From assembly GCA_965112735.1 (NCBI GenBank), contig OZ218954.1, positions 1,116,001-1,180,000 of the forward strand: a stretch of 64,000 nucleotides of DNA. The letters run 5' to 3'. Positions 22,000 to 51,900 of this stretch are shown here, in pieces (the first letter of the stretch is position 1; the number at the start of each line of letters is the position of its first letter). A program made the position numbers and the translations under genes. The notes beneath the pieces were generated by a model. That model saw nothing but the letters and a program-made list of their open reading frames with translations, was not told where the DNA came from and ran no database searches. This DNA comes from Phaeosaccion multiseriatum (taxonomy: Eukaryota; Protista; Ochrophyta, other classes).

Positions 22000-24900
22000 C
22001 TGAGAAGCGCCGCACGAGTGCAGCCAGACACAGGAATCGACACATGCACACAAAGGGAAAGAGAGGGAGGGACGTAGGGAGGGACAGAGCAATAAGAGAG
22101 AGAGAGAGAGATGGAGAAAGAGCGCGTTCTCATAGTACACAAAAATACACAAACAGAAGAACACAAGGCAACCCCCGTACGACGGTGAGTCAGTCCAGCA
22201 GCTCCTTCACGACGGGGCCGAGGACAAGCAAGTAGATGAGCCCCATAAACAGTGGGGGGGTGGCAGCAAGCCAGGCCAGTCCAGTGCCCTCCAATTGCCA
22301 TGGCTGGATCACTCCCTGGCCCCCCTCTCCGTCCCATCCACTGCATCCAGCTCGCTCACTCACTCACCTGTGACTGCTACATTGAGCGTGAAACCGCTTC
22401 CACTCGACTGCAATCTTCGCCATCTTCGCGTAGCACCAGTGGCGGCGGCGGGGTATACTCGAACAGCATACTCCAAGCCCCCCATGACATGCACGTTGGA
22501 CACTTTCATCCCAACACCAGAACACGGGGCTGTAGTACTAGTACCCCCACTGTTATCACTCTCGGCCGCGTCGGACACGCACGAGAGGCTGCCATTTGAG
22601 GATGACACACTGAAGACAGCGATTTGCGTGTCGACGTCGGTGTTATCATCACCACAGGTGTCCGCAGTGAGCGTGCCGCCGAGGGGGGGAGCAGTGAATC
22701 GGTATGTGACGGTAGGTTGGACGAAGCCGGCCTCAGCATCACCACACTTCACATTATCCGAGAGCGGCGCATTGTCAAGGCTTCCCCCAACTGTTGCGAC
22801 GTAGTCGCCCTCGACCAGGCTGAGCGCCATAGCATAGTCCGCTACTCAGAGACAGAGAGACAAATTGAGGGAGAGGGAACATGAAGACGTCAGCAGAGTC
22901 ATACGAGGAGGAGGAGCGAAGCGGAAGAGGAGGGGAGGGGGGTGCAGGCGGAGGAGGACAAGCGAAGGGGAAGATGAGGTGGAGGAGGGGGTGGAGGAGG
23001 AGGGGGCGGGGGAAGAGCTGGTGAGGAGTAGGGGGAGAAGGAGCAGAGGGTGGGCGGAGCCAAACTAGTTTGCCCAGGGGGGGGAGGGGGGCGAGGCGGT
23101 GAAGGCGGCGGAGACCAGGAGGAGGAAGAGGAGGAGGAGGAGCAGAAGCAGCAGGAGGAGAAGGAGGAGGAGGGGGGGCAGGAGGAGCAGAAGAAGAAGA
23201 AGGAGGAGGAGGAGGAGGAGGAGGAGCAGAAGAAGAAGAAGAAGAAGGAGGAGGAGGAGGAGGAGGAGGAGGAGGAGGAGGAGGAGGAGGAGGAGGAGGA
23301 GGAGGAGGAGGAGCAGAAGAAGAAGGAGAAGGAGGAGGAGGCGTAGGTGGAGGAGATGGAGGAGGAGGAGGAGGAGGAGGAGGAGGAGGAGGAGAGGATG
23401 ATGAGGAGAAGGAGGAGGAGGTGGTGGTGGTGGTGGTGGTGGTGGTGGAGGAGGAGGAGGAGGAGGAGGAGGAGGAGGAGGAGGGGGAGGGGGAGGAGGG
23501 GGAGGGGGAGGAGGAGGAGGAGGAGGAGGAGGAGGAGGAGGAGGAGGAGGAGGAGGAGGAGGAGGAGGAGGAGGAGGAGGAGGAGGAGGAGGAGGAGGAG
23601 CAAGAGGAGGAGGGGGAGGACTCACCACACGCGTCTCCTACTCCGTCTCCGTCGATGTCGTCTTGGTTTTCGTTGGCTGTGAACGGGCAGCTGCGAGGAG
23701 TCAGCACGAGGGGGGGAGGAAGTAATGCAGTCAGTGTGGACCCTCTTCGACACACGGGGGCGTCGCGCACGCACACACAGTTGTTACAGTCGCACTTGCA
23801 TGTCAAGTGGAGCAGAGAGGAGGGTGTTGACTAGGCCAAAACCAAAGACTAGCTAGACACAGAGAGGCGCTGGGGGGGGCACACGCACGCACGCACGCAC
23901 GGCGGACAGCCATGAAAAGCAGGGCTACTAACGCAGGCCACAGAGAAATGCGCTGCTGGGGGAGCACACCCAGGCCACGCAGCACACACCCACGCACAAG
24001 CAGCGTGATCCACTCCTGTCAAGTCGGTCCGAAACGTATAGAATGAATTTAAACCACTCACTTGTCGCGATTGTTCGGAATGCCGTCCCCGTCGGTGTCT
24101 GTAATCAGGAGGGCCGCCACCGCCACACGAGACGCACGCCATGGCAGGAGGGCGTGGGAAGCGGCCCAGCAGAGCATAAACAAGGCAAGCGCATGAGAGA
24201 AACGATCGTCAGACTGTGGAGGGCAATGGGTGGGGCAGCCAGCCACGACAAAAGAATCCGAAGTGCTCACTGGCTGTGCGGCCATGAAAAGCAAGCAGCA
24301 AGTATCGAGGAGCGACGAGATGAAGGTGCACAAGTCATCCTCAGCTCCGTCCCTTCCCTCACCATCTCACTCGTCCTTACCTTCGCACACTCTGACTCCT
24401 GATGGGCTAAAAATGTTGCAGGGATGCACAGCCACGGGCGGGGTTCAAGAAGGAACAGGAGAGTTCACCGAACAGCAACACAAGAGCACCAAAGCACAAA
24501 GACAGGAGCAAAGGGGGGGGGGGGGGGGGTGCAAGCGCGAGGGTGTGGGATTGGCGCTCCTTGACTTGCTTATTGGCCAACCCTCAGCCCCTGCAGGAGA
24601 GTAAACGCACTCCTCAAGGCACTCTGCCTGGCTGCGACTACCCACTTACCAAACTCCATCGCCCGTGGCCAGGCAGCATGAAGCACCATCCCCTCTTGTC
24701 TATTGGCCAGCCACAGCCGAGAGTGATACAAGGAAACGTGGGAGACAGGCGCGGATGGATGGTCAGTCATCGTATCACATATCACGTCATCTGGGACGTA
24801 CAAGCGTTTCTCTTGCACTTCCCCTTGCATGGACTGGCCCTTCCTTTTACACACACACCTCGAGATTACCGCAGGCCGTTTGAGCGGTGCACATGGCGGC

Positions 24901-27900
24901 CGAATTACCATGAAAGTCGGTATTCTGTGTGGGGGTTGACGACGTGAGTCAGCAAGAGACCAGGGACACAGAGGGGATGTAAGGAGAGGAGCAAGGCCTG
25001 AGGCATGGGCCGTTCAGCGGCGGTGCGACAGAAGTAAGCCACAGAATTAGCCAGGTTACGAGAGCGAACGTGGGCTGAGACGAATAAAGCACAAAACGGA
25101 GTAAGGTTCAATCCATCGAATTGCCATCAAAGCACAAAGCAAGTCCGCAGACTTGTTCGAGGGGAGCAGGGTGGGCGTTGATGAGGAAAGAGGGCGGGTG
25201 TGCGAGGTCAGCAGAGGGACACAGGGGGGAGGTCAGGAGAGGGGCACAGGGGGGAGGCCCGGAGTGTGTACCGCCAGTGGTACAACACAAGTAAGATACA
25301 CAATCGGCCAAGCAGGCAGCGAGAGCGGCCGGACTGAGAACTCACCAAACAGGAGGATTCCGCCCCTGAGCAGGTTGCGGTCGAATCGCCATAAAAGTCG
25401 GCTCCCTGTGTGGAGCAGGGTGGGCGTTGACGAGAAGAGAGGGCAGCCAGGAGGCCAGCAGAGCGAGAGGCATACGGGGGGGGGTCAGGATAGGGGGGAG
25501 GCCTGGAGTGTGTGCCGCCAGCCAGTGGCTGGTACGACACAAGTAAGCTAAGATACACAATCGGCCAAGCAGGCAGCGAGAGCGGACTGAGTCGAGAACT
25601 CACGCGACAGGATTCCTTCCCTGAGCAGGTTGCGGTCGAATCGTGGTTAAAGTCGGCTTGCTGTGTGGAGCAGGGCGTGTGTTGATGAGAAAAGAGGGCA
25701 GGAGGCCAGAAGAGCGAGGGGCACAGGGGGGAGGTCAGGAGAGGGGGAGGCCTGGAGTATGAGCCGCCAGTGGTACGACACAAGTAAGATACGCAACCGG
25801 CCAAGCAGCCGGCGAGAGCGGACTGAGAACTCACTTGACAGGAGCTCTCCCCTGAGCAGTCGGCCGTGGAATCGTCTTCGAAACGTGCAAACTGTGGGGA
25901 GCAGGCAGGGTGTGTGTTGAAGAGAAAAGAGGGCAGAAGACCAGCAGCAGAGGGGCACAGAGGGGAGGTCAGGAGAGGAGAAAGGCTCAGCGTATGGGCC
26001 CCTGCACCTGTACACCAGCCAGGAGGGTATGACACAAAATCCAATCGGACACGTCAGGCAGCGAGAGTGGAGTTCTTGGGCTGACTGATGAGTGGGCAGT
26101 AGCTGCTACTTTACTCACTCGGCAGCTGTCAGCATCCGTACAGGTCACGGCGCAATTCTTCATGACGGTTGAGCAGAGGCGAGGTGGGCCGCAGCCAGGG
26201 GCGGAAGGAACCCACCAGCCACATGTCATGACAGACATGAGCAAGCCAAAGCATGACAAAGGGCAGCAGCGGGGTGTTGGGGTGTGAGGATGAGGGTGGG
26301 TCCGTACATACATGCTTACATCAAAATGGCGCAACAACGAGGGTGAGTTGCCACAAGTAAAGCAACATGATCATGCAAGCACTCGCTCCCTCACCACAAA
26401 TTTCGTCCACTGTTGAGGCGAGGAGGAGACGCGCGGGTACGAGTGGGGAAGGACCATGTCCGACGACCCCCATACGCGATACCCAACAACATGAGGACAG
26501 GGCCGGCCGCACAGTGTAGGCAGACGCCGCAGGTGCCAAGCAAGGGCAACGCAGAGGCACCAGTCACGTCAAGAGGCAAGAAGGTGCGTGTCAGAAGGGT
26601 TCGCTTACTCACAGCCTGTTAGAAGTCGTGCTTTTGCTAGACTGGTACCTACCCTCTGAATTCAGACCGGGAGGTACCAGTCTAGCAAAAGCACGACTTC
26701 TAACAAGCCCTAATGCTAGAAGTCGAACCCCCCCCCCCCCACCGCACATAGTGGAGAGAAGTAACTCGCAGTCTGGGAATCAGACTAATGGGTGCCAGCC
26801 GGTACCAGTTTTCGCCGATATAATTCAGAGGGTAGGTACCAGTCTAGCAAAAGCACGACTTCTAACACAAGGCCATTGCGAGTTCGAACCCTGGCTGTAG
26901 CTTGTGAAAAAAGTGTGTTTTTCGGCGAAAACTGGTACCGGCTGGCACCCATTAGTCTGATTCCCAGACTGCGAGTTACTTCTCTCCACTATGTGCGGTG
27001 GGGGGGGGGGGGTTCGACTTCTAGCATTAGGGCTTGTGTTAGAAGTCGTGCTTTTGCTAGACTGGTACCTACCCTCTGAATTCAGACCGGGAGGTACCAG
27101 TCTAGCAAAAGCACGACTTCTAACACAAGGCCATTGCGAGTTCGAACCCTGGCTGTAGCTTGTGAAAAAAGTGTGTTTTTCGGCGAAAACTGGTACCGGC
27201 TGGCACCCATTAGTCTGATTCCCAGACTGCGAGTTACTTCTCTCCACTATGTGCGGTGGGGGGGGGGGTTCGACTTCTAGCATTAGGCCTTGTTAGAAGT
27301 CGTGCTTTTGCTTAGCCATACAGATGCCAAGACTCGCAGAGCACAAGCAGAGCCACGCATCAGCAGAGGATTCAAAGAGTCAGTCGGGGTCGAGGACTCA
27401 ATGAGTCAACGAGCAAGGAATAGCGCACGGGACCCATCCACGGCTGGTGAGACGATGCCCTGCCTGCCTTCGCACGCACCTGGCACAACGAGTCGGTACA
27501 GACCACTTGTGGGTCAGAAGGAGAGAGACACGTGCATATTCCGGCTTCCGAGATGACTTGAGTGGAGTAAGTCCAAGTCCATGTATAAGAAGCCGTGAAG
27601 TCGTCGTCCTCGTCGTCCGTGGTGGGGGGAATGTATGACTCCGTACATTGAACGCTCAGGTCTGGCGTACAATGTGGGCAAAAAGCAACAGGGACAGCAC
27701 AGCACAGCACAAGCAAAGAGAGGCCCCGAGCATGTAACAACACAGAGGGTGTGGAGTCCGGATGCCAGTCAGGAAGCAAGGAGAGCAAAGAGGGCACCAT
27801 CAGACCATGGAATGACATGATGTGACAGAGCCCCTCCCTCGGGGGCCTACCCTCCTTGCGTGTTCCCTCCCAGCAGCGCAGTCACAGGTCAGCCCCCCTC

Positions 27901-33900: not shown

Positions 33901-36900
33901 ATTTGACTATACAATTATGCATTTGCCTGGCGACAAGCACTTGTGGGCTGACCCTCTGAGCCGTTGGCGCAAGAGGACGAGCCATGCAGCGCCTTGCGTG
34001 TTGGCTCTACGAGGCGGGAAATTCGGAGCCATGCAGGTCTTTGACATGATGGCGCCTGACTTTCTTTGGCCCACGGAGCAGGAGATTGTCAGCGTTCAGC
34101 AGGAGGCCTTTGCAAAGCTCCTGGACGCTGGCAAAGAGGTGGGAGAGAGTGGTCGCCAACTGCTTCTCTCACAGACTGGCGACGGCGGTCTGATTCGAGC
34201 AAAAAGTAGCACAGATGACGACGCTCAGCAGTCAAAGATTTGGATACCGCGTAAGGCAGAGGATTTGCGCCTTCGGCTCAGCGTAGTGGCCCACCAGGGG
34301 GGCATGGGCCATCGTGGGATGACCAACACGCTGGAAGCTGTAGGGAAGGACTTTGTCTGGCATGGCCAGCATGAGGATATCAAGCGCTTTGTGAACGAGT
34401 GTATTCATTGCCTTAGCAATGGCGTAGGGCTGCGCGTTCCTCGACCGCTTTTGGGTCAATGGCATGCTACCAAGCCCCAGCAGATGATATGGTTTGACTA
34501 TGTCAAGATGGGCAAGGGTATCATTTGGGTTGATGGACCTGATGGGTTCATGCAGATTCAAGTACAGTACGCGCTATGCATTTTTGATGACTTTTCGTCC
34601 TTGACAATGTACGAGCCGTGCTATGAGGCTACCGCACGAGGGTGCGCGCGGGCTTTGCTGAGATGGTTTGCTCAGCATGGCATTGTGCCTCGATGGCAGA
34701 GTGACAGAGGCAGTCATTTCCTCAATGAGGTGATGAGCGAGCTGAGAGCAATGTTGAGGTGTGATCATCATTTTGTGGTGGCACATGCGGCTTATAGCCG
34801 TGGACTTGGGGAGCGCGGAGTGCAAACGCTTCAGAAGCTTATGCAGCCGCTACTATCAGAGATGAGGGCGCTACCAGAGTCGTGGCCGCAGTTTCTGCCA
34901 GTGGTCGAGTCCATCGAGAACAGTTGCACCAAGAGCAGTCGTTCCAGCAAGTCTCCGCTTGAGCTGCATTCAGGCCATGTACCTCAGCGCCCTATCGACA
35001 CGGTTATGCTTCATGATGCTGATCGAGCGCAGAAGGTGGAGTTGAAGCAACTCACCCAAGCGCAGGTCGACACGATGGCTGAGGGGCTGCAGCAAATTCG
35101 GGAGCAGTTACGTACACGGGTCGAGGAGCACCTCTCCAAGATCAGGGAGCGCAAGCGTGATGGCATCAACGCACGTCTATTGCAGGGGCGGCGTGGCGCC
35201 GAGCACAGGAAGGATCTTGATCGCGCGCGCGAGCTCGCCAGCGAGTCAATTTTCCAGCCTGGAGTATTTGTGACGGTGGCGTCAGTGGGGCCTACGAGCA
35301 AGGTCGTTGGCCGATGGCATGGTCCTTGCCGAGTGACTGAGGCTCTCGAGCACCACGTATATCGCATTGAGGAGTTAGTGGGACAGAAGCGCACTTTGGA
35401 CGTGCACATCAACCGGCTACGCTACTACTGCGACGGTGATGTCAATCTTACTACCGACGTCCTCCACCAGATCTCACACAGCACTCAGAGTTTCGTAGTC
35501 GAGTCTTTTGAGGGGCTGGTTAGGCGTGCTGATGGCAGCTGGTTCTTAATCGTCAAGTGGAGAGGCTTCGACGCAGTCGAGAACAGCGAGGAGCCCATCG
35601 AGCAGCTTATGGCGGATACACCCCAAGCAGTGGAGCAGTATCTCGCCAAGCATCCGGACAAACAGCGAATCAGCGCAGTCCGAGCCTACTTGCGGGCCCT
35701 CTCGGAGCGGAACGCAGAGCGGGTAGTAGCGCCCAAGCGCAAGCGTACGCGCAAGAAGCGGTAAGCGTTGTGTTAGGTACTGGGATAGTTTCTTTCCTCT
35801 TTTGACGGCTCGGGCTGTCGCTTGGGGGTAGTGTGCTATTGTCCTATAAAGTGTTGGTCATACATTCAGGGGTCACAGAAATATGAGTGTAACCTTCATG
35901 GACACCCCTGACCCAGGGGGGATAGATAGAAAGCGTGTGGAGAGCACTCTTTTTCTTGCAAGCTCTAAGTGAGTAGTAAAGACTTAATACGGACACCGAC
36001 GCCCCACCAGAGGCGCGGCGAATACTTGGTCCAAACCCCTTAAGCTTTTCTACGTCAGCTTAGCACAGTGAGTCCAAACGGCGGATGGGATGAGCGATGG
36101 CAAACACTCACCACAAAAGTGGTGCCCTGTGACGTCGAAGAAGCAAAGCAGCCATCAGGAAAAAATGCAAAGGAGCGTGGCAGTGAAGCGCAGCAGTGCC
36201 AGCAGAAGGAGGGTGGCGAGGGAGCCAACCGCAGGCCGCCGTGAGGACGAGCAGTAGACAGGGGGCACAGGGGGCACGTTCGCGGTTCGGCCCAGCCAAT
36301 CGTTGCGGATGTTTTGGTGAGTCGTGACCGTGGTATGAGGGAAGGCGAGCGGTTTGTGGCAGAGCGAGAAGAAGGGAGGCAGCACAGCGCAACGGGGTCA
36401 AGTGGAGCGGCGGAACAAAAGTCAGTCATGTGCCCACTTCCTCGAAAGGGAGATTGCTATGGTGAAGGCGTTGACAATGCCTAGCCCCTCTTCCGAGGAG
36501 GGGGACAGCAACTCTACACGCAGATAGATACAGGTGGTAGAGGAAGAGTGGCAGGCAGCATGCTGTTGGTGTAGAGAGAGAGCCTGACTGTAGTGGCAAA
36601 GAGCGCGGGAAGTGCATGGGGGCGAGTCAAGTACTTGGTGAGAAGCGCTGGTGAGAAGCCGCTCACAGCACCCACCAGGCAGACCTGTCCCCCACACAAA
36701 CGTGGATTGAGGGAGTTATCGCAGGTGCATGTGTCGGAGGAGGAGGTGTATGCTCCACCGCCCAGCTCGCACATCGCCTTCTCGGTAATGCCTGTAAGTC
36801 ATGGTAGGTCCAGGGGAAGGAGGTGGGAAGGAGGTGGGCAAAAGGCGAGGAGCGGCAAAGGAGACAAGAAGCACAAACGGAAGTGAGTAGCAAGCTGCCG

Positions 36901-39900
36901 GCAAGTGGGGATTGATCGTCCAATGGGTATGACGATTACAGAGCAGGAGGGGCACAGGGCTGGTGAGTCTGAGGCACACGCAGTCCAGACGAAGGGAAGG
37001 TGGGGGGAGAGAGGCGCAGCATTGCTCCACGTCCGACAACAGGACTGGCGGCTGAATAGAGTAAAGGAGAAGAGGGAGGGTGGCAATAGCAAGCATGAAA
37101 TACCAATCTCCCTCTTCCATCCCAAACGTACCGAAAGTGTATGAGTCTTGCTCGGACGAGGGGAAAGTGCTGGCGTAGAGCTCAGTAGTGCCGTCCGCGT
37201 CGAGGATCTTGAAGCTCGCGCCGTTGATGCGGTCCTTGCAGCAATGGTCGACACGGTTGGTGACCTTGCAGTAGGTAACAACTTGGTCAGCTCCGCCAGA
37301 AAGGTAGAGAGTGAGGCGGGGAGCGGCATCCCCTGCGTCGGAGCGACAGAAGTTGTTCGTGGTGCCGTCGTCGCAGTTTTGAGCTAAAAACGACGCCAAG
37401 GTAGAGCTCAAGGTGATATCCACCAGCGGAATCTTAGCATTGCTGCCATCGTAACATTCGACTTCTGCCAGATTAAGGACACCCTCATCCCCAGTGCTAG
37501 CGTCCGCCGGAGGCACTTCAATGACGACTTGCCTGTCAGAGCCAGGGCACAGAAGCAGCGAGGGGGGGGGGGCATCGACAGGCAGGCAAAACGGGGGTTT
37601 CGCAACGTGCATTAGTGATGACGTCATCTGCGCTTCGAGTAGGCAGCAGGAGGAGTGGCTCAATGAAATGACGAGAAAGGGAAGGTCCATAGGGAGCTAA
37701 ATAGAGGGGGTACTTACTTGCCAACTACGATAGGCACAGGAGAGCAGGAGGGTACACAGGGGTCCAAAGGCCGTCAGTGCCCATCCGCCAAGCCGTGGAA
37801 GCACACATGCGGGCGAACAGGGCAGGCAGCAGTGAGCAGCCCAACGGGGGGGGGGGGGGGGCATGAGCAGCACGCCAGAGTAAGTTTGCTTGTATGGCTT
37901 CGACATTTACGGCGGGGAAATGATCCAAGAGCAGCTCAACCACCAAGAAAGGAAGGATGACTCTGTGCATAGAAAGCTCAGGTCTGGCGTACAATGTGGG
38001 CAAAACACAACAGGGAGAGCACAGCACAGCACAAGCAAAGAGAGGCCCCGAGCATGTAAACAGGGAGGGTGTGGAGTCCGGATGGCAGCCAGGAAGCAAG
38101 GAGCAGAAGGGAGGATCAGGACCGTACCACAGTCAGACCACAGTCAGACCACAGTCAGACCACAGTCAGACCACAGTCAGACCACAGGGCCTTATGTCGT
38201 CGGATGACTTGAAGAATGGAGTGCTTTTCCCCGAGCCCTGCCCTTTCTCACCACACGCGTCTCCTACTCCGTTATTATTGCTGTCTTGTTGGTTGGAGTT
38301 GGCTGTGTCCGGGCAGCTGCGAGGAGTCAGCACGAGGGGGGGAGGAAGTAGTGCAGTCAGTGTGGACCCTCTTGGAAAAAGGGGGTGTTGCGCACGCACA
38401 CACATTTGTTGCAGTCGCACTTGCATGTCAAGTGGAGCGTCAAGTGGAGCAGAGAGGAGGGTATTGACTATGCCAAAACCAAAGGTCCGAAATGCATAGA
38501 ATGAATGAAATCACTCACTTGTCCCAAGGGTCGAAAACGCCGTCCCCGTCGGTGTCTGCATCAGGAGGGCCGCCACCGCCGCACGAGACGCACGCCATGG
38601 CAGGAGGAGGTAGGGAGCGGCCCAGCAGAGAATAAGCAAGACAAGCGCATGAGAGAAACGATCGTCAGACTGTGGAGGGCAATGAGTGGGCCAGCCACGA
38701 CAAAAGAATCCGAAGTGCTCACTGGCTGTGCGGCCATGAAAAGCAAGCAGCAAGTATCGAGGAGCGACGAGATGAAGGTGCACAAGTCATCCTCAGCTCC
38801 GTTCCTTCCCTCACCATCTCACTCGTCCTTACCTTCACACATTCGAGTGAGTGTTGGGCTAAAAATGTTGCAGGGATGCACAGCCATGGGCGGGGTTCAA
38901 GAAGGAAAAGGAGAGTTCACCGAACAGCAACACGAGAGCACCAAAGCACAAAGACAGGAGCAAAGGGGGGGGGGGGGGGGTGTAAGCGCGAGGGTGTGGG
39001 ATTGGCGCTCCTTGCCTTCTTGGCTGGTCAAAACTCAGCCCCTGCAGGAGAGTAAACGCACTCCTCAAGGCACTCTGCCTGCGACTACCCACTTACCAAA
39101 CTCCATAGCCCGTGGCCAGGCAGCATGAAGCACCATTCCCATGTGTCTAGTGGCCACAGCCGAGAGTGATACAAGGAAACGTGGGAGACAGGCGCGGATG
39201 GATGGTCAGTCATCGTATCACATATCACGTCATCTGGGACGTACAAGCGTGTCTCTTGTACTTCTCCTTGCATGGACTGGCCCTTCCTTTTACACACACA
39301 CCTCGAGACTACTGCAGGCCGATGAAGCGGTGCAGTTGGCGGCCGAATTGCCATTAAAGTCGGCAGACTGTGTGGGGGTTGACGACGTGAGTCAGCAAGA
39401 GGCCAGGGGAACAGAGGGGATGTAAGGAGAGGACCAAGGCTTGAGGCATGGGCCATTCAGCGGCGGTGCGACAGAAGTAAGCCACAGAAATAGCCAGGTT
39501 ACGAGAGCGAACGTGGGTTGAGACTAATAATGCACAAAACAGGAGTAATGTTCGGCGCAGGTTGTCATCGAAGCAATTGCCTTCAAAACAAGTCCGCAGA
39601 CTTGTTCGAGGGGAGCAGGGTGGGCGTTGAAGAGAAAAGAGGGCAGGAGGCCAGCAGAGCGAGAGGCACAGGGGGGGGGGTCAGGAGAGGGGGGAGGCCT
39701 GGGGTGTGGCTGTGCCGCCAGACAGTGGCTGGTACGACACAAGTAAGCTAAGATACACAATCGGCCAGCCACGCAGGCAGCGAGAGCGGCCGGACTGAGA
39801 ACTCACCCCACAGGATAGGAACCCTGTGCAGGTTGCGGTCGAATCGTGATAAAAGTCGGCCTCCTGTGTGGAGCAGCAGGGTGTGCGTTGAAGAGAAAAG

Positions 39901-42900
39901 AGGGCAGGAGGCCAGAACAGCGAGGGGAACAGGGGGGAGGTCAGGATACGGGGGAGGCCTGGGGTGTGTGCCGCCAGTGGCTGGTACGACACAAGTAAGC
40001 TAAGATACACAATCGGCCAAGCAGGCAGCGAGAGCGGACTGAGAACTCACAGCACAGGATTCCTCCCCTGAGCAGGTTGCGGTCGAATCGTGATGAAAGT
40101 CGGCGCTCTGTGTGAAGCAGCAGGGTGTGTGTTGATGAGAAAAGAGGGCAGGAGGCCAGCAGAGCGAAGGACACAGGAGGGGGGGTCAGGATAGGGGGGA
40201 GGCCTGGGGTGTGTGCCGCCAGTGGCTGGTACGACACAAGTAAGCCAAGGTACACAATCAGCCAAGCAGGTAGCGAGAGCGGACTGAGAACTCACCGAAC
40301 AAGACCACTGCCCTGAGCAGTCGGCCGTGGAATCGCCATAAAACTTGGCTCCCTGTGTGGAGTAGGGTGTGTGTTGAAGAGAAAAGAGAGCAGAAGACCA
40401 GCAGGGGGGCACGTGGAGGAGGTCAGGAGAGGAGAAAGGCTCAGCGTATGGGCCCTGCACCTGTACACCAGGAGGGTATGACAAAAAATCCAATCGGACA
40501 GGTCAGGCAGCGAGAGTGGAGTTCTTGGGCTGACTGATGAGTGGGCAGTAGCTGCTACAAGAGACTTCCTCACTCACCCCGCATCTGGAGAAGCAATTTA
40601 CGCTAAAGGTCTGAGCACATGATTCCTCCCCTAAGCAGGTTGCGGCCGAATCGTGGTTAAAGTCGGCATTCTGGTTCGAGGGGAGCAGGGTGTGCGTTGA
40701 TGAGAAAAGAGGGCAGGAGGCCAGCAGTGGCCAGAGCAAGGGGCACAAAGGGGGGGGTCAGGATAGGGGGGAGGCCTGGAGTGTGTGCCGCCAGTGGCTG
40801 GTACGACACAAGTGAGCTAAGATACACAATCGGCCAAGCAGGCAGCGGCCGAGAGCGGACTGAGAACTCACATAACAGGAGTTCCCCCCTGAGCAGGTTG
40901 CGGTCGAATCGCCATAAAACTTGGCGTCCTGTGTGGAGCAGGGTTTGCGTTGATGAGAAAAGAGGGCAGCCAGAAGGCCAGCAGAGCGAGGGGCATAGGG
41001 GGGGGGGGTCAGGATAGGGGGGAGGCCTGGAGTGTGTGCCGCCAGTGGCTGGTACGACACAAGTAAGCTAAGATACACAATCGGCCAAGCAGGCAGCGAG
41101 AGCGCACTGAGAACTCACAGCACAGGATCCGAACCCTGTGCAGGTTGCGGTCGAATCGCCATAAAACTTGGCTTCCTGTGTCGAGCAGGGTGTGCGTTGA
41201 TGAGAAAGGCAGGAGGCTAGCAGAGCGAGAGGCACAGGGGGGGGGGGTCAGGATAGGGGGGAGGCCTGGAGTGTGTGCCGCCAGTGGCTGGCTGGTACGA
41301 CACAAGTAAGCTAAGATACACAATCGGCCAAGCAGGCAGCGAGAGCGGACTGGGCTGAGAACTCACCAAACAGGATTGGGCCCCTGAGCAGTCGGCCCTG
41401 GAATCGCCGTCGAAAATTGCAAACTGTGGGGAGCAGGGTGTGTGTTGAAGAGAAAAGAGGGCAGAAGACCAGCAGCAGAGGGGCACAGAGGGGAGGTCAG
41501 GAGAGGAGAAAGGCTCAACGTATGGGCCCTGCACCTGTGCCACAGGAGGGTATGACACAACATCTAAAACCTAGTCGGACGGGCAACGAGAGTGGAGTTC
41601 TTGGGCTGACTGATGAGGGGCCAGCAGCTGCTACAAGAGACTTGCTCACTCACTCGGCAGAAAGCATCCTTACAGGTCACGGCGCAATTCTTCATGACGG
41701 TTGAGCAGAGGCGAGGTGGGCCGCAGCCAGCCAGGGGCGGAAGGAACCCACCAGCCACATGTCATGACAGACGTGAGCAAAGCAGGACGAAGGGAAACAG
41801 CGGGGTGTTGGGGTGTTCGGATGAGTATGGGTCCGTGCATACAGGCTTACATCAAAATGGCGCAAGAACGAGGGTGCCTTGCAACAAGTAAAGCAAGATG
41901 ATCATGCGAGCACTCGCTCCCTCACCACAAAATTCGTCCTCTGTCGAGGCGAGGAGGAGACGCGCGGGTACGAGTGGGGAAGGACCATGTCCGACGAACC
42001 CCATCCGCGATCCCCAACATCACGAGGACGGGGCCGGCCGCACAGTGTAGACAGACGCCGCAGGTACCAAGCAAGGGCAAGGCAGAGGCACCAGCCAGCC
42101 ACGTCAAGAGGCAAGAAGGTGCGTGTCAGAAGGGTTCGCTTACTCACAGCCATACAGATGCCAAGACTCACAGAGCAACAGCAGTACCACGCATCTGCAG
42201 AGGGTTCAAGGAGTCTCGGTCAAGGACTCAATGAGTCAACGAGCAAGGAGCGCACGGGGCCCATCCATCGCTGGTGAGACGATGCCCTGCCTGCGCACAC
42301 ACCTGGCAAAACAAGCCCGTACACTCCGCTTGAACAGAAGGAGAGGTACACGTGCATGTTCCCCTCGAAGTGCCGTCGTCCGCGGTGAAAGGAATGTATG
42401 ACTCCGTGCACACTGGCGTACAAGAATGTGGGCAACAAGCAAGAGGGAGAGCACAGCACAGCATAAGCAAAGAGAGGCCCCGAGCATGTAACAACACCGA
42501 GGGTGTGGAGTTTACATGCCAGTCAGGAAGCAACAAGGAGCAGAGAGGAAGATCCGGACCGATTACACACACCCTTGCTACAGTCAGACCACAGTTAGAC
42601 CACAGGGCCTCATGTTGTTCGAAGGACTTGAATGTTCTACTCGAAGCGCCCCTCGACAAGGTTCACACCCGTCGTCCCCTTTCTCACCTTTACAGTTGTT
42701 CACATTCTCTTGGGTCGGGTTAGGCTCATAGGGGCAGCTACAACAAGGGACATCAACAGCGGATTCGGTCGGAGAGGAGGGGGTGCGTAAGCGGTTAACG
42801 CGTGACCACCTCGGCTCCGCAGAAGGGGGGTTCAGGCCTGAGGCAGGCCACTTGGGCTACACACAGGAGGGAACGAAGTCGCCCGCCCGCCCGCCCGTAG

Positions 42901-45900
42901 CAGCAGCAGCAGCAGCATACACACACACGCACACACCCTCCTGCAGCGTCCACTCACTTGTCCTCCGGGTCCACAATCCCGTCTCCGTCGGTGTCTGGGT
43001 GAGAAGGAAGCACACAACCAACCCAGCGTCACGACCATGCCGACAAGTCCGGGGATGAGAAGCAAGCCACGCCGCCCACCAGCGGAGCGGCAAAGAGGGT
43101 GGCACGAGGAGAGCAAAACCACCAGGACGAGAGGTGGAAGGGAAAAGGACAGAAACAGGTAGCGAGCGTTGTCAGTCGGCAACGCAATGAGCAGCGAGTG
43201 ACCACTCTGAGGTGCTCAGTGTGTAGTAACAGCATCAAAGCCCATGCCGCCCGCATGTTATCAGCTCCGTTCTTACCTACACACTCGGTGAGCGCTCCCC
43301 CAGCAGGAGGGCTTTTTAGTACGATTGAAGTCGCACGGGTAGAGGATTCAGGGGAAACACGGAGTCGGCACGGCAGAACGCAAAACAAACATGAGCGCAC
43401 AAAGGAGGAGAGAGAGCGAGATCAAATGCGAGGGCCCGACCGCGTGTGGGGGGGGGTTCGCCAACAGCTCGTACGGCCCTCCCGCGCCGCAAAAGACACG
43501 CACAGCAAGCACACTCTGTTGCGATCACTTACCACCCCTGTCCCACGCAGCATGCTTCGTCCTCGGTCTGTTGTTCACAGCGGCGCGAGGCATCATCAGA
43601 CAGAGAGCGACGGAGGAGACAGCAGAGGTGCGGTTACTACTAGAAAAACCTCATGGGTGTCCACGGCCGGCGGCGTGCTTGGGTTTCCCCCACCCCCTCT
43701 CATTTGTGACACACACACCTCAAGGTTATTGCAGGCATTGGCGTCGCAACTGGCGTAGGAACTTCCCAGCAGGACAACACTCTGTAGAGGGCGGTTGGGG
43801 CGAGGTCAGAGAGAGCAATCAAGTGTTGGGAGAGCGTTTTCGAGAGGATGAGCAGGAGAATACCATCCACTTTGTCCATTCTCGCTTCGTCAGGGCCCAG
43901 GTGCATGCAAAGACAGAGGGAGAGGGCCGAGGGTACAAACAAGGCTTGCTCGCAAGGAGGCGGGGAACGCACAGGAGCGAGAAGCGGAAAGTGACAAACA
44001 GAAAGGGGGCAAAAACACACAGCGAGGAGACCAATCGAACGTAGACAAGTAGAGCAAGCATGAGAGAAAATGGGGTGGGAAGGAGGGGTCGCGAGAAGGT
44101 GGAGAGGCACCGCAACGCCCCGTCCCCGTTAACTCGTGTGTAACGTCTACTACCCCCCCATGCCAAGACGGACTCACCTCGCAGCTGCCGGTTTCCGTGC
44201 AGTCAACAGCGCAGTTCTTCAGGATAGGCAGCATTGTGAGGTGTGGACAAGAGAGAGAGAGAGGGGCGGAGTGAGCAGAGTCGATATGATGCATCAGTAT
44301 GAAAGGAGCCAAAGGGGGGTGGGGAGAAGGGGGGACCCTGGCAGACAGCGACGGCGCAGGCTTAGACTGGCACGAAGGTCAGGTAGGTGCTAAAGCTGTC
44401 GCAAAGAATGCAGAACAGCTGCACACTAAGTCAATATAATGAAAGGCGAATCTCAAACGTCAATCAACAAGCGGTGGAGGCCACACTCAGAACCACTTCT
44501 CAGCCCCTGTCTGGCGTGGGAGTCCAAACGGCGGATGGGATGAGCGATAGCAAACACTCACCACAAAAGTGGTGCCCTGTGACGTCGAAAAAGCAATGCA
44601 GCCATCAGGAAAAAATGCGAAGGAGCGTGGCAGTGAAGAGCAGCCAGCAGCGTCAGCAGAAGGAGGGTGGCGAGGGAGCCAACCACAGGCCGCCGTGAGG
44701 ACGATCAGTAGACAGGGGGCACAGGGGGCACGTTCGCGGTTCGGCCCAGCCAAGCGTTGCGAATGTTTTGGTGAGTCGTGACCGTGGCATGAGGGAAGGC
44801 GATCGGTTTGTGGCAGGGAAGAAGAGAAACAGTACAGCGCAACGCGATCAAGTGGAGCGGCGGAACACGAGTCAGTCATGTGCCCCCTTCCTCGAAAGAG
44901 AGATTGGTATGGTGAAGGCGTTGACACCGCCCACCCCCTCTTATAAGGAGGGGGGCAGCAAGTCTATACGCAGATAGATACAGGGGGTAGAGGAAGAGTG
45001 GCAGGCAGCAGGCTGTTGGTGTAGGGAGAGAGCCTGACTGTAGTGGCAAAGAGCGCGGGAAGTGCATGGGGGTGAGTCAAGAACTTGGTGAGAAGCTCTG
45101 GTGAGAAGCCGCTCACAGCACCCACCTGGCAGACCAGTCCCCCACACAAACGTGGATTGAGGGGGGTCACAGAAGGGCAGGTGCACGTGTTGGAGATGGA
45201 GGAGGTGACGTATTCTCCACCGTCCGCCTCGCACATCGCCTCCTTGGTAATGCCTGTAAGTCATGGTAGGTCCAGGGGAAGGAGGTGGGCAAAAGGCGAG
45301 GAGCGGCAAAGGAGACAACAAGAAGCACAAACGGAAGTGAGTAGCAAGCTGCCGGTAAGTGGGGATTGATCGTCCAATGAGCATGCCGATTACAGAGCAC
45401 AGGAGGGGCACAGGGCTGAGATTGAGTCTGGGGCACACGCTGCCCAGACGAAGGGAAGGTGGGGGGGGCGAGGGGAAGCTTTGCTCCACGTCCGACAACA
45501 GGACTGGCGGCTGAATACAGTAAAGGAGAAGAGGGAGGGTGGCACTCAATAGCAAGCATAAAACACCAATCTCCCTCTCCCCTCCCCAACGTACCGAAAG
45601 TGTACTCGTCTTGTGCGGATGAGGGGAAAGTGCTGGCGTAGAGCTCAGTAGTGCCGTCCGCGTCGAGGATCTTGAAGCTCGCACCGTTGATGCGGTCCTT
45701 GCAGCAATCGAGACGGTTTGTGACCTCGCAGTACTTGACGACTTGGTCACGTCCGCCAGAAAGGTAGAGAGTGAGCCGGGGAGCGGTATCCCCTGCGGCG
45801 GAGTGACAGAAGTTGTCCTTGTCATCCTTGGTGCCGTCGTCGCAGTTTTGAGCTGAAAACGACGCCAAGGTAGAGCTCAAGGTGATACCCTCCAGCGGAA

Positions 45901-48900
45901 TCTTGTCATTGCTGCCATCGTAACATTCGACTTCTGCCAGATTAAGGACACCCTCATCCCCAGTGCTAGCGTCCGCCGGAGGCACTTCAATGACGACTTG
46001 CCTGTCAGAGCCAGGGCACAGAAGCAGCGAGGGGGGGGGGGCATCGACAGGCAAAACGGGGGTTTCGCAACGTGCATTTAGTGATGGCGTCATCTGCTTC
46101 GAGTAGGCAGCAGCAGGAGTGGTTCAATGAAATGACGAGAAAGGGAAGGTCCATAGCGAGCTCTGGCTGTTCACTCAGTTTCACAGAGGGGGTACTTACT
46201 TGCCAACCTCTACGATAGGCACAGGAGAGCAGCCAGGAGGGTGCACAGTGGTCCAAAGGGCCGTCAGTGCCCATGCGCCGAACCGTGGAAGCACACATGC
46301 GGGCGAACAGGGCAGGCAGCAGTGAGCAGCCCAAGAACGGGGGGGGGGAGGCGTGAGCAGCACGCCAGAGTAATTTTGCTTGTATGGCTTCGACATTTAC
46401 GGCGGGGAAATGATCGAAGAGCAGCTCAACCATGGCAGCTAAGTATTGATCGCCCTCTACTCGCCCCCCCCACCCCGCGGGAGCATGACGCAGCCACGTG
46501 TACTTACCGAAAGTGTATGAGTCCTCTGCGGGTGAGGGGAAAGTGCTGGCGTAGAGCTCAGTAGTGCCGTCCGCGTCGAGGATCTTGAAGCTGGCGTTGT
46601 TGATGCGCGCCTTGCACGTACTGCAATCGCGACGGTTGGTGACGTCGCAGTACGTGACGACCTGGTCAGGTCCGCCAGAAAGGCTCAGAGTGAGGCGGCC
46701 GGGATCTTGTGCGTTCCCGTCGGAGTGACAGAAGGTTGTGTCGTCGTCGTCGGTGCATCGAGTGGCAAGAAACCTGGAGGGTCTGTAGAGGGAGCTCAAG
46801 GTGATGCCGTCTAGCGGAATCTTCGTGCTGCCGCCATCATAACATGCAACTTCAGCCAGATTGAGGATACCATCAGGCCCAGGGTTAGTGTCCGCCTTGA
46901 GCACTTCAATCACGACCTGCCTGTCAGAGTTAGGGCACATGAGTAACGAGGGCAGGGCGGGGGGAGGGAGGGCACCGACACGTAAGACGGAGACCTCGCA
47001 TGCACTGGAGGTGATGGGCTGTCTGCACTTCGACATTTAGGCAGCAGGAGGGGTGGCTCAGTAAGGTGAGGAGAAAAGGAAGGGTCCAATGATTTTCTCT
47101 CTTCTCAGAGGGGCACTTACTTGCCGGGATCTTGGCACAGGCGAGCAAGCAGAAGAAGAGTGCACAATGGTCCCAAGGGCAGTCATCCACGGAGCCGTCC
47201 GAGCGAACGCACATACGTTCGAAGAGGGAAGGCAGTGTGAACAGCCCGTGGGAGGAGAGAATCAACACCATCACAGAGGTCCAGACATGAGAACAGGCAA
47301 AGAGCAGATGGGAGTGAAACAAGGAGTAGTAGGCGTCAGTGTCAGGCGGTGCCCGCGATAGATCAAAGCATACAGCCCTGTCGAAGCCGGAGGAGGAGGA
47401 TAAGGGGGGTGGTACTTTGACCCATCGCATACGAAGGGAGAGGGAAGAAAGGGGGCAAAGGAGGAGGAGGGCATGGCATAGGCTACTTGACAACCAGCAC
47501 ATACGTTCCGCGACTACGGACAGCGCGTAAGTGAGGAGGAGGAGGAGGAGGAGGAGGAGGAGGAGGAGGAGGAGGAGGAGGAGGAGGAGGAGGAGGAGGA
47601 GGAGGAGGAGGAGGAGGAGGAGGAGCGGGGATGAAGAAAGCGTCTCCCCCTCAAGCCGCACGCGGCCATTGTGTGTTACCACCACGTCCAACCAAGTCCT
47701 CTTCAGAACACTGAGATTTCATCACGCACCTTTGCTTCGCTCGCAGACGAAGCCAACCGCTTCAGGGAAGTCGCTGCAGGGAACATCGCTCCAGCCGGGC
47801 AGAAGGCCGCCTCCGAAGTAATACGAGCCGCAGAGCTGCGTGTCGCCAGAACTGTTCGGCTGGTCGGTCTTCCAGCCCCATCCATCCATGTCCGCCATAA
47901 CGTCCGCCGTCGCCGTGCCCTCTGCCCACGTGAATGCTGTTTTGCCATTGGCAGGGCCTGGTTCCCGCTCGAAGCTAACCCAGACATGGGCGTTGTTGAT
48001 ATCTGGGATGAGTCCCTTGACGTAGTCGTCTTCGGTCTGGTCGTTGACGGACACGAGGGCGGCCCCATTCAGCTCACACCGGGCAGTCGCTTGGTCGCGA
48101 GTGACGCCAGGCTGAGGGACGTAGAAGTACTCCGAGGCCGAAGAGGTGTAGGTATTGCTCTGGGTGAAGTCCACTGCTCAATGACAGCCACCCATGGTGT
48201 GTCACAACCATTCGAGGAGTAGGGGCCGCAAGTGAAGCAGGCCGCACGGCAGCAGGAGGAAGACGCTGTGCTAAGTTCAGATAACGTCTTATTATCCTGA
48301 ACCTCTAGTATTGCGTGAACCTCTAGTATTGCGCAATACTAGAGGTTCAGGATAATAAGACGTTATCTGAACTTAGCACAAAAATATTTCCGAGGTCGGG
48401 GGTACAGATCCCTTGTGTGACCAGAAAGTTAATCGTCCCGAGGGGAGGATAACTCGTTAGTCGTCCCGAGGGGAGGATAACGGATATGACCCCGCAACCC
48501 GGGGAAATATTTTTGTGTTAAGTTCAGATAACGTCTTATTATCCTGAACCTCTAGTATTGCGCAATACTAGAGGTTCAGGATAATAAGACGTTATCTGAA
48601 CTTAGCATAACGCGAGCCAAAGGAGGAAGACACGAGTAGCAGCGGAAGGGTGTGTTGGGGGGCGGGTGAAATCAAATCAGTGCCTGAGGGCCCGAAATAC
48701 GATGCAGACAAGGAGGCCCGACAAGAAAGGGTGTTGTGGAATTTGCACTTTGCGATCGTCGGGTGAGGCCTTTGCCCGACGATGAAGAGTAGAGAGAGAG
48801 AGAGAGGGCGGCGGATGTAATGGGAAAGTCGATGGTAGGGAAGGATGAGGACGACGATGGGGGGGAGACGGGGAAGAAGGGGGGAAGACTTGCTCGATGA

Positions 48901-51900
48901 GGAGACCGGGAGGGAGAGGAGGTGGCGGGGGTGAAGGGGAAATCGGTGTAGAATAAGGTGGTGGTGGTGGTGGTGGTGGAGGAGGAGGAGCAGCAGCAGG
49001 AGGAGGAGGAGGAGGAGGAGAAGGAGGAGGAGGAGGAGGAGGAGCAGGAGGAGGAGGAGCAGGAGGAGGAGGAGGAGGAGGAGGAGGAGGAGGAGGAGGA
49101 GGAGGAGGAGGAGGAGGAGGAGGAGGAGGAGGAGGAGGAGGAGGAGGAGGAGCAGGAGGAGGAGGAGCGGGGATGAAGAAAGCGTCTCCCCCTCAAGCCG
49201 CACGCGGCCATTATGTGTTACCACCACGTCCAACCAAGTCCTCTTCAGAACACTGAGATTTCCTCACGCACCTTTGCTTCGCTCGCAGACGAAGCCAACC
49301 GCTTCAGGGAAGTCGCTGCAGGGAACATCGCTCCAGCCGGGCAGAAGGCCGCCCCCGAAGTAATACGAGCCGCAGAGCTGCGTGTCGCCAGAACTGTTCG
49401 GCTGGTCGGTCTTCCAGCCCCATCCATCCATGTCCGCCATAACGTCCGCCGTTGTCGTTCCGTCTGCCCACTTGAACGCTGTTGTGCTGCGGGTGGCGCC
49501 TGCTTCCCGCTCGAAGCTAACCCAGACATGGGCGTTGTTGATATCTGGGATGAGAGCCTTGACGAGTTCGTCTTCGGTCTTGTCGTTGACGGACACGAGG
49601 GCGGCCCCACTGGCCGCACATATAGACATCGCTTGGTCGCGAGTGACGCCCGGCTGAGGGATGAAAATGTGCTCTGAAATGCCATTGCCGGATGCGAAGG
49701 AGGCTTCTCATGCAGGCAACAGGAGGGAGAGTGCGGTCAAGGAAAGATGTAGCACAACCACGGAGAAGCAGGGGCAGTGAGGAGGCCGTACAGGGAAAGG
49801 AGGGCGGTGAGCAGCAGTGCGAGGGCGCGATAGTGGGCGGGTGGATACAACTTCAATAGAGCTAGCCTGCTTGAGGGCGACAGCAGGCCAGGCCAGGCCA
49901 GGTGAGGCAAGGAAGAAGGGGTGCTGATTAGCTGGCAGTCAGGTGAGATGAGATGAGGCTCTTGCCCGAGGAGGAAAAGCACGGGATGGGGGTTGCTTAT
50001 CGAGGCAGGCAGGGCGAGAGGCAGGAAGAGTCGATGACGGAGAGAAGAATGAGGAGGACGATGGCGTGGAGGAAGTCAGGTAGAACAGGGCGATGGGAGA
50101 TGTCAGAGAAGGGGGGGGGGGGGGACTTCAGGGCTAAGGATGCACGGCTCTTGAGCAAGCTCAGGCACGTGAAGCACAACGAAAACGACGGACACATCAA
50201 CGGCCTGGGTGGGGTCTTCCCCGCATGTGGCTGGAAGAGGCAAGGTGCTAGATAATGAACACAGCTTCCAGAATTCGTGCGCCATCACTCACTCACCACA
50301 TTCACCCGTCGAAGGGATGCATACCATCCCCTGTTGACACTGGCAGTCCTCGCAGGCTGGAGCAGACGAAGCGAGTGAGAGAGAGGATGGAGAGGAAGGG
50401 GGAGGCAAGAAGGTTGGCTGTGGCAAAACAACTTGAGCGATGAAGCGCATCGATGTCCGAGAGTGAGAGTGGGCGGCGGGTAACAACACACGGCACCACC
50501 ATGCCCCACATATGTTGGCCTTACATCAACAAGACACATCAGCCAACACCATTCGGACTGACCTGATGCACCTGTTGTGATAAGTATCGCCATTTGTGAC
50601 TGAGCACTATATCGACGTACAATATCGATGTGGATATCGATATTCATGTATGGCCACGGCCATCACTTCCTTGAACGCATCTCTCAGTAGGTATTATTAA
50701 TACACGAGTTGACACTACTCTAGCTTGTCCCTGTCATCGTAGAGGAGATATCGCAACACGACAGCTGTCGCGACACTTCACAGCTAGCTGGTTCTACGTA
50801 GTCGGCGACGGCACACAGGCGAGTTTTGGTCGGATAACTCAAGTGAGAGAGAAGGAGTCCTTTCGTTAGCCATGCCAGGCGCGGAAGAAGAAGGCGTTGA
50901 AAAGGCGGACGCAGCGGCGCCCGTCAGTGCGAGTTCCGCGATAGAAGGAGACGCACAGCAGCAGATGGCTGAAATGATGGAAAAGATGATAGCGGCAGCG
51001 TTGGCCAAACACATCACACAGCAAGGAGTGCCCACGGCAGCGGCCGCAGCACCAGTCACTATCTCCTCAGTCGGAGGAACAGTGACCCCCAGCGGGGGGG
51101 GGAGTACAGCACAGCAGCTGCTAGAACTCACGTTCAAGCCGAAGAACAATGAGTTTGACAAGAAGTTGGAATCGGAGGGAGTGATGCCTCTCTTGCGATT
51201 TATGCGAGCGGTCACGGATCACATAGGGGGGATGGGGGCAAAGGCATTCTTGGTGGATAGTGATAAGATCCCCAACGCAGACGACGCCTCCCGGGACTCT
51301 AAGTATGCCCTGACGTTCAGTCTGTACCAACAGACGGGCCTCAAGATTTTGGAGGCCATTCCCTCGGACATGAGGGATGCCATAGAAGAACGCACTCGCA
51401 CAGCGCGGTTCCAAGTGGACCTGGTACTATTGATGCAGGCAATCAAGGAGGCAGTGATGGGGAGCACGCAGTCACAGCGACAAGAGTTTCTCACCTCCGA
51501 GATGCACGATCTGAGGCCAGGGGTGGGGGAGACGGGACTTGCCTACCTCAACAAGTTTCTCCAACTCAACGTGTTGATGACGGAGGAGCAGCTTCCTATG
51601 TCCTACTCCATCATCAAGGACAAGTTCCTCAGGCGTATGGGGCAGAGATGGGAGTCGTTCGGCCAAGTGCACGGTCATTCGGTAGAGACAGAGGACGAGT
51701 TTAATCGGTTCAAACAGCAAGTGCAGCGGTTTGACAGTGACCTCCAAGCGCAAGCGAGGGAGGCGGGAGAGGACCTTGAGCGGGGCCTTTTCCACATTTA
51801 CCAGCAAAGGCAGAAGACACAGCAACCAGCAGGGGGGGGTAGACAGACCACCACAGGGGCAGGAGAGAAAGATCGGTCCAACACACGCTGCTACAGGTGT

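Follow-up and report, generated by a model that had tools for sequence, protein, structure and literature searches.

The 64,000-nt window analysed here, positions 1,116,001 to 1,180,000 of contig OZ218954.1 (assembly GCA_965112735.1) of the alga Phaeosaccion multiseriatum, carries on its minus strand an array of seven short exons, each of which codes for a single 19-residue Cys repeat. We refer to the array and the domain exons around it as gene A, or module A. The array is best explained, with a probability of about three in four, as a variable-length, variable-surface repeat domain in a large multi-lectin gene of extracellular type, which evolves in the germline by diversification. The rate contrast that carries this reading is unusually clean, with neutral sites differing at about 0.1 and variable codons at about 0.7, and unit gain, unit death, hybrid formation and patch exchange are all legible at this one locus. 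The DNA of the window is eukaryotic and nuclear, has a GC content of about 57% and is dense in microsatellites; its contig, C5 in the following, belongs to a 67-Mb assembly of 22 contigs.

Anatomy of the repeat-exon array

Tandem Repeats Finder (TRF) delimited tandem units of 245 and 251 bp at 39614-40404 and 40683-41493. Core exons were located by a motif scan of both strands, which demanded an open stretch of 57 nt and all nine scaffold residues. We thereby identified seven in-frame core exons on the minus strand between 41423 and 39807, six of 57 nt and one hybrid of 93 nt, all of them bordered by AG and GT and each coding for one repeat of the pattern x-A-x-F-x-x-D-S-x-A-x-C-x-G-x-x-S-C-x. 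The upstream border reads ...CACAG, and the donor downstream is GTGAGTTCTC in all units but that at 40614-40670. An earlier reading made from the letters of the window alone (the sequence-only reading) had already described units of about 245 bp with a symmetric phase-0 exon for this motif, and had counted seven core units here against three in a paralogous block; the TRF units and the motif scan agree with both. The parts of the array and its paralog within the window are as follows.

41367..41423, minus strand: core unit 1, 57 nt, phase 0; its exon type is the one invariably found after the cap intron
41119..41175, minus strand: core unit 2, a 57-nt exon from the motif scan
40872..40928, minus strand: core unit 3, a 57-nt exon from the motif scan
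40578..40670, minus strand: hybrid exon of 93 nt, core unit 4 (40614-40670) fused in frame to a cap2-like tail
40296..40352, minus strand: core unit 5, duplication partner of unit 1
40051..40107, minus strand: core unit 6, duplication partner of unit 2
39807..39863, minus strand: core unit 7, duplication partner of unit 3
about 39530..39600, minus strand: decayed (inactivated) unit inside the last array intron, seen in an alignment of seven paralogs
39302..39367, minus strand: C-cap exon, 66 nt, internal, its donor CTCGAG/GTGTGT conserved in seven paralogs
24859..25891, minus strand: paralogous array of gene or module B; its core units number three (57, 57 and 60 nt) and are accompanied by one decayed unit and a C-cap exon

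Unit 4 has no donor after its nucleotide 57; the frame stays open for 36 nt more, up to a GTGAGTGAGG donor at 40577, and the exon still ends in phase 0. The intron behind it matches the cap2 intron. We read this 93-nt exon as the junction of a 1.05-kb higher-order duplication, the two copies of which run from 41649 to 40671 and from 40577 to 39621, each block consisting of a cap intron and three units.

The last array intron is long in every paralog, about 390-440 nt, and the decayed unit within it carries an in-frame TGA in six of the seven paralogs, has indels of lengths not divisible by three and lacks a GTGAGT donor. We also considered the last exon (39367-39302) as a terminal exon with a stop codon. 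This was rejected: the CTCGAG/GT donor is kept, and the stop behind the exon is not conserved because the (GT)n run differs in length by 2 nt between paralogs.

The core units of module B lie at 25835-25891, 25604-25660 and 25346-25405, the last being the 60-nt variant with one additional codon before C18 and the frame kept. A core exon of 54 nt, one codon shorter and likewise in frame, is the second unit of two further arrays on the same contig, C5:221k and C5:508k (L031:4473-4526 and L032:4517-4570).

Exon divergence in excess of intron divergence

Selection was estimated with counting methods rather than with likelihood site models. Per-codon analysis of the gene A array assigns the variation to codons 1, 3, 5, 6, 15, 16 and 19, the same residues that had been named from the letters alone. 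The mean pairwise difference is 0.57 for these seven variable codons, compared with 0.066 for the introns and 0.08 for codon positions 1-2 of the scaffold.

The two copies of the internal duplication give the sharpest comparison. Intron divergence between them is 8.9% (68 of 760 sites) and that of the three exon pairs 26.9% (46 of 171; Fisher P 3e-9), which bears out the excess of exon over intron divergence that the sequence-only reading had put forward. Nei-Gojobori counts of synonymous (pS) and nonsynonymous (pN) differences gave a pS of 0.110 and a pN of 0.037 for the scaffold codons, and a pN of 0.679 for the variable codons (Fisher P 6e-22 vs introns), with fourteen codons differing by two or three bases. 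Since synonymous sites and introns agree, neutral divergence is near 0.1; the scaffold codons are under purifying selection, and the seven variable codons are close to saturation.

The contrast was replicated twice. Between unit 1 of gene A and that of B, noncoding sites differ at 0.106 and variable codons at 0.53 (P 4e-5), and in a two-unit duplication on contig C7 the corresponding values are 0.144 and 0.313 (P 0.014). Across eight arrays, the nucleotide diversity (pi) of the variable codons ranges from 0.46 to 0.64 and that of the introns from 0.045 to 0.38, and the arrays vary at largely the same codons (1, 5/6, 15, 16 and 19, often 3).

The introns of the array are similar to each other, as had been noted at the outset, but they are not specially conserved. 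Their divergence equals that of synonymous sites and of the remaining noncoding DNA of the paralogs, the loci of which are 82-88% identical over kilobases. The idea that the introns are introner-like mobile elements was rejected on the same grounds, and the unit is moreover confined to the loci of the family.

Exchange between units and mode of evolution

At A, B, C5:221k and C5:508k the exon after the cap intron belongs to a type of its own (…DS-R/T-A-D-C…), while the intron downstream of it is like those of its neighbours. In a 524-bp alignment of C5:221k and C5:508k, 3 of about 418 noncoding sites and 6 of about 105 exon sites differ, and all six exon differences are nonsynonymous, located at codons 1, 3, 16 and 19. 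In unit 1 of C5:221k four of the five differences (codons 16 and 19, including one triple change) match the 3' end of the adjacent unit exactly. We take codons 16 and 19 of C5:221k to bear the mark of a single short patch templated by the adjacent unit, the one clear patch event. The opposite case, an ACG codon at C5:508k as the received patch, was rejected; a donor was sought for it and none was found, and the reverse direction, with 221k as recipient, fits.

The pairwise homoplasy index (PHI) was significant on nucleotides (P < 2e-4), a value confounded by linkage within codons, and also with codons as characters in a set of 25 exons (P 0.004-0.008). Together with the patch at C5:221k this lends moderate support to mosaic exchange between units, which had been suspected from the recombined look of the exon halves.

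From these observations we propose the following course of evolution. Unequal crossing-over between similar introns would gain or lose whole exon-plus-intron units, and as every unit is in phase 0 and a multiple of three in length, the frame never shifts when a unit is gained or lost. Gene A would have acquired three of its units through the 1.05-kb duplication and the hybrid exon as its scar, while other units would die in place by mutations of splice sites and frame and turn into intron. Codons 1, 3, 5, 6, 15, 16 and 19 would collect amino-acid replacements far faster than neutral sites under diversifying selection on a ligand-contact face, with the scaffold residues A2, F4, S8, A10, C12, G14, S17 and C18 held by purifying selection, and short templated patches swapped between units would generate mosaic exons.

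A family of repeat exons across the genome

A search of the genome with a 301-bp unit yielded 61 matches at about a dozen loci on contigs C2, C3, C5, C7, C9, C14 and C16. All fourteen loci that we examined carry 57-nt exons with the common scaffold, in a single orientation per locus, and a scan of both strands found no family exon on the opposite strand in the window or at the 14 other loci. To the intron subfamily with donor GTGAGTTCTC belong nine arrays with 29 exon ends altogether, each array holding between 1 and 7 units (unit counts 1, 2, 3, 3, 3, 4, 5 and 7). Other subfamilies differ in their intron ends, with exon length and scaffold unchanged. Genome-wide there are more than 100 exons of 57 nt, and the pattern of scaffold plus donor has at least 142 matches, as opposed to 1 for the reversed control.

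The array on C3 (C3:5088000-5105000, L038/L039) comprises 46 exons in a higher-order repeat of four to five units, about 1.0-1.2 kb long. Seven or eight copies of this repeat are near-identical, with identical peptides, and the array would thus represent a very recent amplification, unless it is an artefact of the assembly. Among its youngest copies, 0 of 285 exon sites and 7 of 932 intron sites are variable; a mutator coupled to duplication was rejected on these figures.

Two further loci show other arrangements. At C9:1298000-1315000 (L042/L043) modules of about 4.75 kb with four core exons each follow one another head to tail, among runs of exons resembling thrombospondin type 3 repeats (TSP3-like) spaced at about 750 bp, which suggests that the family includes very large multi-module genes. 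At C2:3283000-3302000 lie further exon ends that match the scaffold pattern; they have GTAAG donors, recur about every 302 bp and may belong to an additional subfamily.

Repeat identity and predicted fold

Single exons of the window (24 and 31 residues) matched no Pfam family. A profile built from 62 natural exon peptides and searched against 1.84 billion representative proteins matched three proteins, of which one is credible (P0004, E 8e-9 over 7 stretches). The other two were judged spurious: P0003 is long, repetitive and unrelated, its Pfam matches amounting to scattered noise, and P0005 belongs to the RCC1 repeat proteins.

P0004 is a metagenomic protein of 332 residues that carries a signal peptide and a C-terminal membrane helix, and is by these features a surface protein; its eight repeats are 18 residues long and almost match the window repeat in motif. 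It scores 33.2 bits with the Pfam family DUF7640 (PF24646), above the gathering threshold of 28.1, and its motif, x-A-x-F-x-x-S-T-x-x-C-x-G-x-x-S-C, resembles that of the window repeat, at a period of 18-19 residues. It differs from the array in being uninterrupted over its 332 residues, as called on its contig, in its 18-residue period and in its N-x-S/T sequons. A word-based search with P0004 recovered itself alone, the ESM Atlas gave no usable match, and no mention of DUF7640 was found in the literature searched. PF24646 run on the six-frame translated genome produced a single match of 17.7 bits on C1, rejected as a low-complexity false match; the threshold of its model of 121 positions is out of reach for a 19-residue exon.

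The AlphaFold (AF2) single-sequence model of P0004 reached a mean predicted local distance difference test (pLDDT) score of 69, with 75-90 in the repeat blocks, and is all-beta with three short strands per repeat, in keeping with a right-handed parallel beta-solenoid, where coils of about 18-25 residues with two or three strands each are stacked. Its Foldseek matches were weak and all solenoids. VIA-align gave Z scores of 16.2-15.2 to the beta-helix adhesins TibA, Vag8, pertactin and Ag43, and of 13-15 to tailspikes, pectate lyases and a beta-helical antifreeze protein. In proteins of this kind a coil is a short repeat that turns a ladder of hydrophobic or Cys residues inward and rows of ligand-contacting residues outward. 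The fold class predicted for P0004 (Z 13-16) is that of these right-handed beta-helix adhesins and glycan-binding proteins, phage tailspikes included, and of beta-helical antifreeze proteins; the adhesins and tailspikes are, however, bacterial or phage proteins of intronless genes, and with 5-13% identity there is no sequence relationship.

By analogy, the repeat domain of the window would very probably form a three-stranded right-handed beta-solenoid with one 19-residue coil per exon. Positions 1-5 would then be strand one, with 1, 3 and 5 pointing outward and A2 and F4 inward, and positions 6-8 a turn. Strand two would take up positions 9-13, its conserved row T-x-T/D-x-S pointing outward while A10 and C12 point inward; G14 would make the next turn and positions 15-19 strand three. 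On such a coil the variable residues 15, 16 and 19 and residues 1, 3, 5 and 6 of the next exon would form one continuous stretch across the exon junction, a plausible site of binding or recognition.

The gene around the array

The gene context was derived by comparing open segments with distant paralogs and with the window itself. Provided that the exons are spliced as drawn here, the following features accompany the array.

49270..49707 (approximate limits), minus strand: C-type lectin domain exon, copy 1, a close duplicate of copy 2
47730..48174, minus strand: C-type lectin domain exon, copy 2, with donor GT at 47729
46506..46925, minus strand: discoidin-like (galactose-binding-like) domain, copy 0, 66% identical to copy 1 (tblastn); PF22633 weak, E 0.053
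45590..46006, minus strand: discoidin-like domain, copy 1, PF22633 E 0.005; the block is conserved in distant paralogs
44181..44240, minus strand: cap1 exon (motif ...KNCAVDC...C), with a 95% identical copy at 30016-29957 in gene B
43713..43766, minus strand: C-cap-like exon closing a mini-module without core units; resembles the C-cap exon
42957..43028, minus strand: TSP3-like acidic exon (DxDxDGxxDxxD), 81-86% identical to paralogous copies on C9
42232..42450, minus strand: Cys-rich stretch similar between paralogs, in the frame of segment 42662-42231; tblastn matches to C9, C2 and gene B 27693-27402
41654..41689, minus strand: cap2 exon (NCAVTCKDAFCR), donor GT at 41653, acceptor inferred; kept on C9, C2 and in gene B at 26166-26122
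38518..38568, minus strand: next TSP3-like exon, downstream of the array, from tblastn within the window

On the minus strand the order of module A is accordingly two C-type lectin domains, two discoidin-like domains, cap1, directly followed by the C-cap-like exon, then TSP3-like exon, Cys-rich stretch, cap2, array, C-cap and TSP3-like exon. Module B, from 37537 to 24061, repeats the series discoidin, cap1, C-cap-like, TSP3, Cys-rich, cap2, array, C-cap and TSP3; A and B are either two genes or two modules of one gene.

The C-type lectin assignment passes the Pfam threshold (Lectin_C, PF00059, for 48174-47722: 34.8 bits vs a cut-off of 22.6, E 3e-8). PF22633 scores 14.6-17.9 bits on the discoidin-like domains, below its cut-off of 27.8, and PF00754 appears only in distant relatives; the database relatives P0001 and P0002 of copy 1 carry both PF00754 and PF22633 (E 5e-8). 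These domains are best called discoidin-like. For the TSP3-like exon Pfam yields only a weak EF-hand_5 match, and we regard it as a putative calcium-binding linker. Copies of it in the window besides that at 42957-43028 lie at 38568-38518, 28271-28203 and 24099-24061.

With its C-type lectin, discoidin-like and TSP3-like modules the product would be of extracellular type. The extracellular solenoid envisaged by the sequence-only reading is thus favoured on both counts, by the domains that accompany the array and by the outside relative, which models as a beta-solenoid.

Several side observations concern the DNA between these exons. About 1.5 kb separates the two C-type lectin exons, which are duplicated in tandem, and behind each of them, in the putative intron, comes a lengthy uninterrupted triplet microsatellite (on the plus strand (GAG)31 at 47533-47625 and (GGA)63 at 48978-49167). 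A Ty3/gypsy element with reverse transcriptase (RT), RNase H, integrase and chromodomain lies on the plus strand at 31.7-35.8 kb (about 30500-36000), between the discoidin-like domain and cap1 of module B (37127-30016), presumably within an intron; the same interval measures 1.35 kb in module A. A Ty1/copia element at 50872-55703 on the plus strand, with zinc knuckle, SH3-like domain and RVT_2, sits just upstream of the first C-type lectin exon and may have disrupted or displaced the 5' end of the lectin gene.

Weighing the interpretation

A number of results count against the array being a diversifying surface domain as proposed here. Four-fold degenerate sites are more diverse than introns (0.38-0.40 vs 0.07, in gene A's five to seven units and in A plus B), and synonymous changes per site, mapped on the intron tree, are about 4x the intron changes. 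Exon and intron histories are therefore partly decoupled in gene A or A plus B, and part of the rate excess may reflect exchange of older variants and not new substitutions. Unit 1 of the two C7 modules is not accelerated, and the codon-level PHI was not significant with 17 units. No predicted protein of the family from the source organism is among the 1.84 billion proteins searched, the one-repeat hhalign score of the window repeat to its relative is weak, and the proposed fold derives from a single-sequence model (pLDDT 69) of that distant relative. Finally, a signal peptide and the start codon of the window gene were not located.

The synonymous excess would suit a different history, which we consider improbable, in which the units date far back, the seven codons vary neutrally, for lack of constraint, and have reached saturation, and the introns look young because gene conversion, or some role of the introns themselves such as the splicing of very short exons, has preserved their similarity. 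Within gene A the excess of four-fold over intron differences is significant (0.40 vs 0.07, P 3e-4), and the disparity on the intron tree points to some intron homogenisation or to decoupled histories. In the clean duplicate pair, however, synonymous divergence of the scaffold (0.11) equals that of the introns (0.09), most other arrays have a synonymous diversity close to their intron diversity, and the array introns are no more alike than kilobases of other noncoding DNA of the paralogs. Variable and scaffold codons are, moreover, interleaved at 3-20 nt, a scale at which conversion tracts would homogenise both unless selection removed the products.

It is very unlikely, in our judgement, that the array acts as a combinatorial device within the individual, where skipping or choice of exons at the RNA level, or somatic rearrangement, would produce many surfaces per gene. 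All exons are symmetric and in phase 0, any subset of them would remain in frame, and Zambounis et al. raised a like idea for the LRR (leucine-rich repeat) exons of Ectocarpus (PMC3341825). Yet nothing in the DNA demands such use, no inverted or silent donor cassettes were found around the array when both strands were scanned, and the youngest duplicates are identical, so that no mutator is tied to rearrangement. Were this slim chance to come true, a stramenopile-type alga would possess a repertoire comparable to those of Dscam or the VLRs, based on an orphan repeat and with many solenoid surfaces per lectin gene.

That the array is a dead or untranslated tandem repeat, its open frames being leftovers of recent duplication, is hardly credible in spite of the gypsy element within the sister module and the one decayed unit, as every core exon found in gene A and in the family is open with AG/GT borders, scaffold pN is 0.037 compared with a neutral 0.09-0.11, the scaffold is kept in subfamilies with diverged introns, and the single truly decayed unit looks unlike the others.

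Relation to known systems

The closest parallel to a germline-diversifying array is found in Ectocarpus, where genes for cytoplasmic GTPase or NB-ARC proteins carry one 24-residue LRR (72 nt) or tetratricopeptide repeat (TPR) per exon (PMC3341825; Front Plant Sci 2024, PMC11378527), and where shuffling is overwhelmingly limited to LRR and TPR loci (PMC3341825). As in those genes, each repeat of the window corresponds to one phase-0 exon of a constant length divisible by three, repeat number varies among recent duplicates (7 vs 3 in tandem, 1-5 elsewhere), inactivated exons remain in introns (here the decayed unit common to seven paralogs), and a few fixed repeat positions are under positive selection (here by counting, pN 0.68 vs 0.09 in introns and a pS of 0.11). 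In contrast to Ectocarpus, the repeat is an orphan Cys repeat of 19 residues (57 nt) with no Pfam match exon by exon, the flanking domains are Lectin_C and discoidin-like instead of ROC-COR or NB-ARC, and no repeat exons were found on the opposite strand in the window or at the 14 other loci, whereas Ectocarpus has them on the non-coding strand in introns. The array parallels the one-LRR-per-exon genes and, with another repeat, other attached domains and a probably different cellular location, is not a member of that family. The analogy with Ectocarpus drawn at the outset therefore stands for architecture, acceleration at fixed codons, gain and loss of units and the decayed exon; what had been termed a diversification system would amount to ordinary crossing-over, conversion and selection.

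Accelerated exons beside introns evolving at a neutral rate are reported for habu venom genes (PMC6062510), and schistosome micro-exon genes (PMC4350168) are a host-interface case of exons evolving faster than introns. The array resembles both, in that exons outpace their own introns mostly through amino-acid changes. Micro-exon genes have tiny symmetric exons that permit in-frame variation, and the products of venom and micro-exon genes are small secreted effectors. Unlike in either, the acceleration here is confined to seven codons of a repeated scaffold within a solenoid array.

Significance

Brown-algal arrays with one repeat per exon under diversifying selection have so far been described only for intracellular LRR/TPR receptor candidates. 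Here a like genomic design occurs on an unrelated, almost orphan 19-residue Cys repeat in a multi-lectin protein of extracellular type, and the repeat now occupies at least about 140 exons of a 67-Mb genome through expansion. A single credible relative was found among 1.84 billion representative proteins. The family is a candidate for recognition at the cell surface, be it of pathogens, symbionts, gametes or substrates, in this lineage, and it offers a tractable case for asking whether symmetric repeat exons serve combinatorially.

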